Positions 14,504-18,307 of a stretch of DNA of 64,000 nt are shown here, one piece after another. Made by a program: the position numbers and the translations under genes. The notes under the pieces were generated by a model. The model saw nothing but the letters and a program-made list of their open reading frames with translations, had not been told where the DNA came from and did not search any database. This stretch comes from Dimorphilus gyrociliatus (Eukaryota > Animalia > Annelida): the NCBI GenBank assembly GCA_904063045.1, contig CAJFCJ010000006.1, positions 930,001-994,000 of the forward strand, given 5' to 3'. The first letter of the stretch is position 1, and each line of letters opens with the position of its first letter.

Positions 14504-16373
14504 ATGGAATCGGATATTCTATCAGTAGCTGATTCTCGAATTGCTGACGCTAAAGCAAAGGCTAGACCTGGTTTGTTTCCCTTCGTTCTAGAATATTCTA
14601 AAAATACTTTCTCTTTATATTACTCTTAGAATTACAATGCTTCTCCATAGGCAAGTGTAGAATAAGATTTTATATCATTCAATTAACGCTTCAAACAGCC
14701 ATTATCTTTTTTCTAAATTCGACAAATTATTATTCAATCCATATTATTTTTATTGAATAACATAATTTAGAGCTAATTATTGACTTAATATGCCTTCTGC
14801 AGATGTTTATCTTCAATAATCAATGATGAATTGAACCACTTGTACATTAAATTCAATATTACTTTTTATTATTCCTCTTTGCATAGAAAGAAGCTTTTGT
14901 AATTTCAGTTTTTTTTCTAAAAGAAATAAATTTTGTGTGATCTGTGATAAATTAACTTCATCTTTTCTTACGACAAACAGAGTTACAAGGTGACGAAGGT
15001 TGGACAAAGTGTAATTATTATGAAAAGTTTGATTTATCATGGGAGCATATCGATGACACTCTGGAACGAGTAGATGCCAGAGTAGTTTCGGAAGAAGAGT
15101 TTATTGAACGATTCGAGAAACCTTATAAACCAGTAGTTGTAAGCCATGGACAAGATGGCTGGATGGCAGCTGAAAAGTGGACCTACCCTGTAATTATCTA
15201 AAACATAAAATATATATCATGACAAATTATAATTTTTTTCCAGCGACTGGCAAAGAAATATAGAAATCAAAAGTTTAAGTGCGGCGAGGACGATGATGGA
15301 TATTCAGTTAAATTGAAAATGAAATACTTTGTTAAATATGCAGCTGATCAGAAAGATGATAGTCCATTATACATTTTTGATAGCAGCTTTGGAGAGGTAC
15401 TGCAAATATAAAACTATTTCTATATGCATACAGTATTTCTCTGTTATAGCATTCGAAAAAGAGAAAAATATTAGAAGATTATCAAATACCGAAGTATTTC
15501 AAAGATGATTTGTTTAAGTATGCCGGTGAAGCCAAAAGACCACCTTATAAATGGTTTGTAATGGGTCCTGCTCGATCGGGAACTGGAATACACATAGATC
15601 CTTTAGGAACAAGCGCATGGAACGCTCTTGTTAAGGGTCACAAACGGTTTGTCTCCTCTGAATATTTCCTCATCAAATAATTTGAATGTCGAATAACTTT
15701 TTTGTAGATGGTGCCTTTTTCCTACAAACACACCTAAGAAACTGTTGAAAGTGGCTTCCGGAGTTGGGGGTAAACAAAGAGACGAAGCTATAACATGGTT
15801 TCAGCATGTTTATCCTCTAACTCAAATGCCTGAGTGGCCTGCTGAATTTAAACCTATCGAAGTAATTCAGAAACCTGGAGAAACCATGTTTGTTCCTGGC
15901 GGATGGTGGCACGTTGTTTTGAATCTCGATGAGACAGTGGCAGTAACTCAAAACTTTTGTAGTGTAACGTCTTTCCCTGTAATATGGCATAAAACTCTTC
16001 GAGGACGTCCAAAATTAAGCAAACGATGGTATGAAGCCTTGAAAAGGTTTAAACCCCACTTGATACCGATTGCTGATGCAGTCGATTTGTCCAAAAAGAC
16101 GCATGTCGTTAGCGACTCTTCGTCATCGAGTGATAGCAGTTCGTCAAGCTCGGATGCGGAGAGCATAGACTCTGATAGCGATTCGTCGGTTGGTAGTGCC
16201 GTGGGGATAGCACCATCACCGAACTCTTCATTGAGGCCCGCGGCTAAGAGAAGGTAGATGAGAGATATTTTTTATTCAATTGTTTGAAATTTTCAATTTA
16301 TAGAAAGAAAGGCCCGGAAAGGTGCAAAAGTCCATCCGGATGTTCATGCAACTCAGACAAAGTTACAAACTAA
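14504..16373 (+). CDS. JMJD6: JmjC hydroxylase/arginine demethylase JMJD6. Exons approx. 14504-14570, 14981-15189, 15244-15396, 15450-15646, 15708-16253, 16304-16373
   Basis: [11 protein letters not shown]|[64 protein letters not shown] (HxD), [23 protein letters not shown], poly-Ser tail. Confidence 0.96.
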
Positions 16374-16802: not shown

Positions 16803-17617
16803 ATGGCCCTGGAAGTATTGGGCAAAAGACTCCTTACAAGGGCCACAACTAACGAGGTAGTCTTTTAAATTATGTTACTTTAACTCCTATATTATCATTT
16901 ATGCTCTCTAAGACCGTCGAAATGAAGGAGCTTTGGTCTAACAGGAACGCTGTTATTTACTTCTTAAGACGATTCGGATGACAAATATGTAGGCTTTATG
17001 CTAAACAGGTTCGCCTAAATATATGAAGGACGGACAGATCTATTAAATTAGGTATAAAATATTAAACGTTTCAGCTATCTGAGATTGCAGAGCTACTTAG
17101 ACGACATAATACTGTTATCGTTGTTATTGGCGTAATGGAAGACGCTGGCAGCTTTCAAAGTTTTATGGATGGTAATTACCTAGACGGAGGTAAACGCTTT
17201 CGAAGAGAATTTTTTCCATCTCATTATATTGTAATTAGCATTCTCTTTACAGAGGTTTACACAGGCGATGAACAATTGTATCAGGACATAGGCTTTAAGC
17301 CATATTCATGCTGTGGACTTTGCTGTCTAGCGTGTACGTGTTGTTGTAGATCTGCCGTTCGTTCACAAATGAAGGGAATTCGAGACAATAAAATAGATGG
17401 TGATTTAGTTGGAAATCCTTTCAGGAATGGAGGAACTCTTATTATAAAAGATAACCAATTACTTTTAAGCCACATTCAGGAAACAGCGGACGACCACGTT
17501 GAAGTTATCCAAATTGTAAACATACTTGGTCTCACCCTGGATCAGTCTCTAAAAATAGTTACTAAGCAACCGAGGACAGTTTGTAATGACGAAGTTTGTC
17601 GGATTAGAAGAGATTAA
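16803..17617 (+). CDS. PRXL2B: Peroxiredoxin-like 2B / selenoprotein U family protein with in-frame TGA (Sec) in a UxxC motif. Exons 16803-16856, 16913-17008, 17075-17189, 17253-17617
   Basis: Spliced reading MALEVLGK...AVIYFLRRFG[TGA 16979-16981]QICRLYAKQ|LSEIAELL...FMDGNYLDG|EVYTGDEQLYQDIGFK...GDLVGNPFRNGGTLII...HIQETADDHV...VCNDEVC aligns with the PRXL2B-type LRRFGCxxCR motif, with TGA at the first Cys; SECIS in the 3'UTR. Confidence 0.88.
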
Positions 17618-17666
17618 TTTTCATAGTATCTCCTTCGGCAGGAAGATTTTTAAAGAGATTAGCATC

Positions 17667-17731
17667 TACGTATCGATGATGAAAAATAGTTAAATCCTTT
17701 TAAGGAATCTATTTTTTTGATGTTTAACGTA
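17667..17731 (+). promoter_or_regulatory. Eukaryotic type-II SECIS element (3'UTR RNA structure for selenocysteine insertion)
   Basis: AUGAU 17676-17680; helix II GAAAAAUAG 17681-17689 pairs with CUAUUUUUU 17709-17717; AAA 17692-17694 lies 11 nt after the core; apical mini-helix UCCU/AGGA; UGAU 17718-17721; helix I UACGU 17667-17671 / ACGUA 17727-17731. Confidence 0.88.
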
Positions 17732-18307
17732 TTTTGGCTTATCTCTTAAAAATCTTTATATGATTTATAGTATTTCTGTTAAAAATCAAAAATTTCTCTT
17801 TATCGTAAGGTAACTTCTTTCTAAAACATTGTTTTTGATTAAACAAATAAAAAAGAAATTAGCATAAAACTATTAGAAGTACTGTATTAAAATTCTACTA
17901 TTTCTAAAAATTCTTAAACATCAAACGGTGCTTTAATGCTGCATAAGTATAGACGAAGCACTTTCATAAGCTTGTAATTAATTGAATAACACCGCAGATT
18001 TTGCGTACGGCAGCAATAAAAAAAATTCAAAACAAAAGCCACCGTTATAACTCAGACAACTGCTTTGAAGCTTTCTTTTTTTAACATTTTTAGCCTGTTT
18101 TTTAATTAGAAAAAAAACGCCGGAAACGTACACACTCAAACGGGTTTATATCTTGCTCTACAGAGGAGAACGCGTGTATTTCTTTCTCTGTACCTAAATC
18201 GTTTTTGACAATAATAACGTAATCTTTTTCAATCTTTAATATACTATACAATGGAAAAAGAGAACAACGAGTAACATTGCTATTTTTTTATCATCTCTTC
18301 TTCTTAC

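Follow-up and report, generated by a model that had tools for sequence, protein, structure and literature searches.

Jiang et al. (2012; PMC3473315) have reported selenocysteine (Sec)-containing SelU proteins of all three subfamilies, with SECIS elements of the AUGA_AA kind, from six invertebrates. According to the same work, the annelid Capitella teleta has one Sec-containing SelU, and SelU3 is the most abundant SelU group of invertebrates (PMC3473315). The core of the SECIS element has a published consensus, UGAN/KGAW (PMC3753652). For binding, SBP2 requires that the tandem be capped by a non-Watson-Crick pair, usually U.U, and that purine-pyrimidine pairs and a stable helix II follow (PMC1874613). 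A search of the literature found no paper on the selenoproteins of Dimorphilus gyrociliatus. Here we describe a hairpin of 65 bases at positions 17667-17731 of a 64-kb stretch of D. gyrociliatus DNA (the window). We are highly confident that it is a real SECIS signal of a PRXL2B/SelU-family gene in which an in-frame UGA is read as selenocysteine.

In a search of the window, the Rfam covariance model SECIS_1 (RF00031) matched 17667-17731 on the plus strand and scored 42.3 bits, above its gathering score of 35. The match was full-length (model positions 1-64), with an E-value of 3.2e-5 for both strands of the 64-kb window. An earlier note on this DNA had claimed a SECIS at exactly these coordinates and had proposed covariance-model scoring as a check; the score obtained lies above the curated threshold for eukaryotic SECIS elements. 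The hairpin was also the sole match to any Rfam family above threshold in the window, and the sole RF00031 match in a search of the 77.9-Mb genome in which 120 of 1459 first-look candidates were scored. A local permissive Rfam scan again matched the same bases to RF00031 (E 1.7e-7). The parts of the element are as follows.

17655-17745, plus strand: full hairpin including the basal extension of helix I (minimum-energy and centroid folds)
17655-17663 with 17736-17745, plus strand: basal extension of helix I, 9 pairs (RNAfold)
17667-17671 with 17727-17731, plus strand: helix I, 5 bp below the internal loop (Rfam model and fold)
17676-17679, plus strand: 5' core AUGA (read directly)
17680 with 17718, plus strand: U.U pair stacked on the G.A tandem (read directly)
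17681-17689 with 17709-17717, plus strand: helix II, 9 consecutive bp (Rfam model and fold)
17692-17694, plus strand: unpaired AAA (AAR motif), 11 nt past the last 5' quartet nucleotide (Rfam model and reading)
17695-17698 with 17703-17706, plus strand: predicted apical mini-stem UCCU/AGGA, 4 bp with a UUUA loop (minimum-energy fold)
17718-17721, plus strand: 3' core UGAU, whose GA at 17719-17720 forms sheared pairs with the GA of AUGA (read directly)

Since the AUGA faces a GA and the U.U pair joins 17680 to 17718, the core can be written as UGAU/UGAU, with the 5' UGAU at 17677-17680 opposite the 3' UGAU at 17718-17721. This core agrees with the UGAN/KGAW consensus. Helix II opens with a G.U purine-pyrimidine pair followed by A-U, and the U.U pair, these two pairs and the nine pairs of the helix in the hairpin match the requirements of SBP2 described in PMC1874613. 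The AUGA/GA quartet, the 9-bp helix II, the unpaired AAA 11 nt from the core, the apical mini-stem and the lower helix I had all been claimed in the earlier note, and each was recovered at the positions listed above, the mini-stem as a predicted fold. In D. gyrociliatus the element is canonical at every core and helix position.

A kink-turn built on G.A/A.G pairs is common to SECIS elements and C/D-box RNAs, and the hairpin could be another kink-turn RNA, such as a small C/D-box snoRNA within the UTR. Its 5' AUGAUGA is a perfect C box, and the permissive Rfam scan listed several C/D families on the same bases. These matches, however, reached 15-18 bits against thresholds of 39-60, with E-values above 1. 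Moreover, the 3' box is UUGA and not CUGA, the interior is closed by the 9-bp helix with no single-stranded guide, and a snoRNA would leave the AAA at a SECIS-specific distance unexplained. We consider this explanation extremely improbable, the least probable of those weighed here.

Hairpins may also arise by chance in AT-rich DNA, and an AUGA and a GA could fall within one that has no role in recoding, the UGA being a true stop or its exon being skipped. With 25% G+C in the region and a helix II made almost wholly of A-U pairs, hairpins of this sort form easily. Against this stands the E-value of 3.2e-5 in the window, over the curated threshold. A home-made SECIS descriptor (AUGA, helix II of at least 8 bp, AA at the right distance, 3' GA and helix I of at least 4 bp) found one site on the two strands of the window (128 kb), at 17667-17731. 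In contrast, 100 simulated sequences of 64 kb with the same dinucleotide statistics contained a mean of 0.09 sites each. The chance rate of the descriptor is thus 0.09 sites per 128 kb, or about 2e-4 per 300-nt UTR on one strand. RNAfold gave the hairpin a fold of -20.4 kcal/mol (z -2.89; 3 of 200 shuffles were as good), and its minimum-energy and centroid folds were the same.

The hairpin lies on the sense strand of the host gene, in its expected 3'UTR. Its first base is the 50th nucleotide after the stop codon TAA at 17615-17617, which bears out the distance claimed in the earlier note. In the predicted spliced mRNA, 566 nt separate its AUGA from the in-frame UGA upstream. From the stop codon to the last base of the hairpin there is neither AAUAAA nor AUUAAA; poly(A) hexamers first occur further downstream.

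17838-17851, plus strand: AUUAAA at 17838 and AAUAAA at 17846, about 110 nt beyond the SECIS

Both hexamers, the putative polyadenylation signals of this mRNA, sit inside a block that shows no change in the relative described below. Immediately downstream of the SECIS there is no sizeable open reading frame on either strand. Another conserved block, at 17850-18050, is 88-96% identical to the relative; it lies downstream of the first AAUAAA and stops close to another AAUAAA, at 18015. This block could belong to an extended 3'UTR isoform or be an element of its own, and its fold was no better than those of shuffled sequences.

The host gene, as predicted from reading frames and splice sites, has four exons.

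16803-17617, plus strand: predicted PRXL2B/SelU-family gene, four exons (frames and GT-AG sites)
16803-16856, plus strand: exon 1 (frames and GT-AG sites)
16913-17008, plus strand: exon 2, 96 nt, carrying the UGA (frames and GT-AG sites)
16979-16981, plus strand: in-frame UGA, putative selenocysteine codon (reading; kept in the relative)
17075-17189, plus strand: exon 3 (frames and GT-AG sites)
17253-17617, plus strand: exon 4, ending in the TAA at 17615-17617 (frames and GT-AG sites)

The exons were searched one by one against Pfam and PDB. Exon 4 matched the solved structure of the prostamide/prostaglandin F synthase PRXL2B (PDB 9us9) over residues 96-185 with an E-value of 6.7e-6. Exon 4 alone scored 20.6 bits against the Pfam family AhpC-TSA_2 (PF13911), below the whole-protein cut-off of 27. 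Exon 3 aligned collinearly to PRXL2B residues 54-89 (E 0.36). Searched singly against Pfam and PDB, exons 2 and 3 are too short and gave no significant match. The sole PDB match of exon 2 was a repeat protein, which was dismissed as spurious. The gene probably belongs to the PRXL2B/SelU family, the subfamily being taken from the matches of exons 3 and 4 to PRXL2B and not from a tree.

The UGA at 16979-16981 lies in exon 2 within the redox motif RRFG-U-QIC-R. It stands ten codons upstream of the codon aligned with PRXL2B residue 54, and by collinearity it corresponds to about residue 44. We take this residue of PRXL2B to be the first cysteine of the CxxC motif. The UGA would accordingly appear to occupy the first-cysteine position of a CxxC/UxxC redox motif, as judged by collinearity with the solved protein. 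The UGA precedes the junction of exons 2 and 3 by 27 nt and the last junction by 142 nt; nonsense-mediated decay of the mRNA would be predicted if this codon acted as a stop. In the public protein DgyrCDS4396 (P0001), exon 1 is followed directly by exon 3; the 96-nt UGA exon is dropped and the frame is kept. Because this skip is in frame, an mRNA without exon 2 and without Sec is formally possible.

The in-frame omission of exon 2 from the annotated protein is a further point on the side of a chance hairpin. Such a hairpin, however, would have to lie 50 nt past a gene of a known selenoprotein family with a UGA at the position of the redox cysteine, and exon 2 and its UGA are conserved in the relative in a gene with a dN/dS of 0.14. 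A chance origin is therefore very improbable, if not quite so improbable as a snoRNA.

Two other observations concern this gene and its surroundings. In exon 4, at 17300-17345, there is a cysteine-rich run, CCGLCCLACTCCC, with 9 Cys in 13 residues, which is mostly kept in the relative; human PRXL2B presumably has an ordinary loop where this run sits. The run could be an insert for palmitoylation or for binding metal. Upstream on the plus strand (15000-16255), the neighbouring gene resembles JmjC genes of the JMJD6 type, with a tail rich in serine, and the gene order is apparently the same in the relative's contig.

A word-based protein search with exon 4 as the query gave the annotated protein and one relative as the sole matches, so that no wider set of orthologous SECIS elements could be assembled for covariation. 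The relative, a sister species, is represented by two identical Logan contigs, L002 and L003 (SRR23372228 and SRR23372231). It has the same gene order (synteny) and exon structure, and its UGA, reading frame and splice sites are intact. Between the coding sequences of D. gyrociliatus and L002, pN was 0.066 and pS 0.361, with a dN/dS of 0.14 (Nei-Gojobori, exon by exon). In exon 4, which follows the UGA, pN was 0.085 and pS 0.478. The codons after the UGA are under purifying selection. The low dN/dS indicates that the sequence 3' of the UGA is translated and selected. For this, the UGA must have been recoded, with the help of a working SECIS, during most of the period since the two species split. 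The hairpin itself has an orthologue in the sister species.

L002:5385-5447 (and L003): orthologous hairpin of the sister species, identical in both runs

The AUGA with the U that follows it, the AAA and all nine pairs of helix II are identical between the two hairpins. Helix I keeps five of its five pairs in L002, four of them identical and one changed from A-U to G.U, and the minimum-energy fold of the relative also has a basal extension stem. In both runs the 3' core is UAAU where D. gyrociliatus has UGAU. As a result, one of the two sheared G.A pairs is missing: the UAAU puts an A.A pair at position 2b.2n (kink-turn nomenclature), the site of the second sheared A.G pair. The L002 hairpin scored 31.8 bits, below the RF00031 gathering score of 35. 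With the 3' G lost and a score under the threshold, conservation of the core is imperfect. SECISearch3 would reject the L002 hairpin, which is without GA-AG (PMC3753652). The two sequences gave no statistical support for covariation, as 234 of 500 shuffles did as well. In its minimum-energy fold, helix II of L002 has 11 bp and ends in an open 13-nt loop, and the pairs of the mini-stem are only partly kept. The apical region is therefore type-I-like in L002, whereas it is type-II-like in D. gyrociliatus; close as the two species are, they do not share the type II character. The type II assignment made in the earlier note depends on the 4-bp mini-stem predicted in D. gyrociliatus and does not carry over to the sister species.

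The disrupted 3' core of the sister species shows that the locus tolerates damage to the SECIS at least briefly, as would be expected if the hairpin were the decaying relic of a once-working SECIS on a pseudogene or on a truncated or exon-skipped gene. All core and helix positions in D. gyrociliatus are nevertheless canonical. The frame, the splice sites and the UGA are intact in both species, and the rate of nonsynonymous change is about one seventh of the synonymous rate. We rate a relic as very improbable, on a level with a chance hairpin. The low dN/dS and the untouched helix II suggest that the G-to-A change is recent or tolerated. The case for the D. gyrociliatus element, canonical throughout, is not diminished by the UAAU core of L002. 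That the UAAU hairpin still supports Sec insertion, as a natural exception to the GA-AG core that SECIS finders take as obligatory, is unlikely. A search of the literature found no mutagenesis paper on the 3' UGAU. If functional, the UAAU core of the sister species would show how far SBP2 depends on the second sheared pair.

Conservation between the two species is also high in the stretch 16950-17250, which covers the end of exon 2, intron 2, exon 3 and intron 3 and is 92-100% identical. Introns 2 and 3 are conserved like the exon 3 between them. In contrast, nearby intergenic DNA is 35-50% identical and the synonymous sites of exon 4 differ at 48%. No Rfam match was found in 16950-17250, and its fold on either strand was no better than those of shuffles.

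Searches of the genome for the Sec machinery gave a tRNA-Sec with 80.7 bits against a gathering score of 47 and the anticodon TCA (ARAGORN). SepSecS was matched with 305 bits for its best exon, or 409 bits with the neighbouring exons, and SPS (selenophosphate synthetase) with 188 bits. As judged from these predicted genes, the organism has the Sec-decoding components tRNA-Sec, SepSecS and SPS. The earlier note had favoured Sec recoding over pseudogenisation, and this preference is supported by the score above the model threshold, the gene family, the dN/dS of 0.14 and the presence of these three components. A Sep15/SelM-family match with one in-frame TGA was also seen in the genome, with a SECIS-like hairpin about 185 nt downstream.

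L019:1907-1969 (G000:C3, about 2062480-2062542): SECIS-like hairpin of the Sep15/SelM locus, RF00031 28.9 bits, below threshold

This locus is probably another selenoprotein gene of this genome. Near it, on the minus strand (L019:601-789), a sub-threshold SNORA74-like H/ACA snoRNA match scored 39 bits (gathering score 71, E 6e-7). An Rfam scan of the SPS and Rdx-family loci with 1.5 kb on either side found no SECIS with an E-value up to 0.1.

A mechanism can be proposed on the basis of the known function of SECIS elements. The hairpin probably lies inside the mature mRNA. The sheared AUGA/GA tandem with the U.U pair above it would form a kink-turn, to which SBP2 is expected to bind. SBP2 would then bring eEFSec with Sec-tRNA(Sec) to the ribosome, and the UGA at 16979-16981, 566 nt upstream, would be decoded as selenocysteine. 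The selenocysteine presumably inserted at this codon would form the first position of the UxxC redox motif.

Overall, the element is a fresh instance of a well-known kind, and we regard the result as a sound annotation and not as a discovery. The SECIS provides an independent signal for restoring the 96-nt exon with the predicted catalytic Sec to the DgyrCDS4396 model. The selenoproteome of this miniaturised annelid genome also grows by one member, and SECIS biology is otherwise left unchanged. Compared with the form 2 (type II) elements of RF00031, the hairpin is alike in the AUGA...GA quartet, the U.U pair, the 9-bp helix II, the unpaired AAA 11 nt from the quartet, the predicted mini-stem, helix I, the expected place in a 3'UTR and the score above threshold. 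There is no essential difference, the nearly all A-U helix II fitting a genome of 33% G+C. The D. gyrociliatus SECIS is unusually near the stop codon for an RF00031 element (50 nt), in a compact genome. Compared with the SelU3/PRXL2B selenoproteins of Capitella teleta and Lottia gigantea, the locus shows the same family, a predicted Sec in the redox motif and a SECIS of the AUGA_AA type in the expected 3'UTR. It differs from the described invertebrate SelU3 genes in the species, and in that the public annotation hides the Sec exon of D. gyrociliatus.
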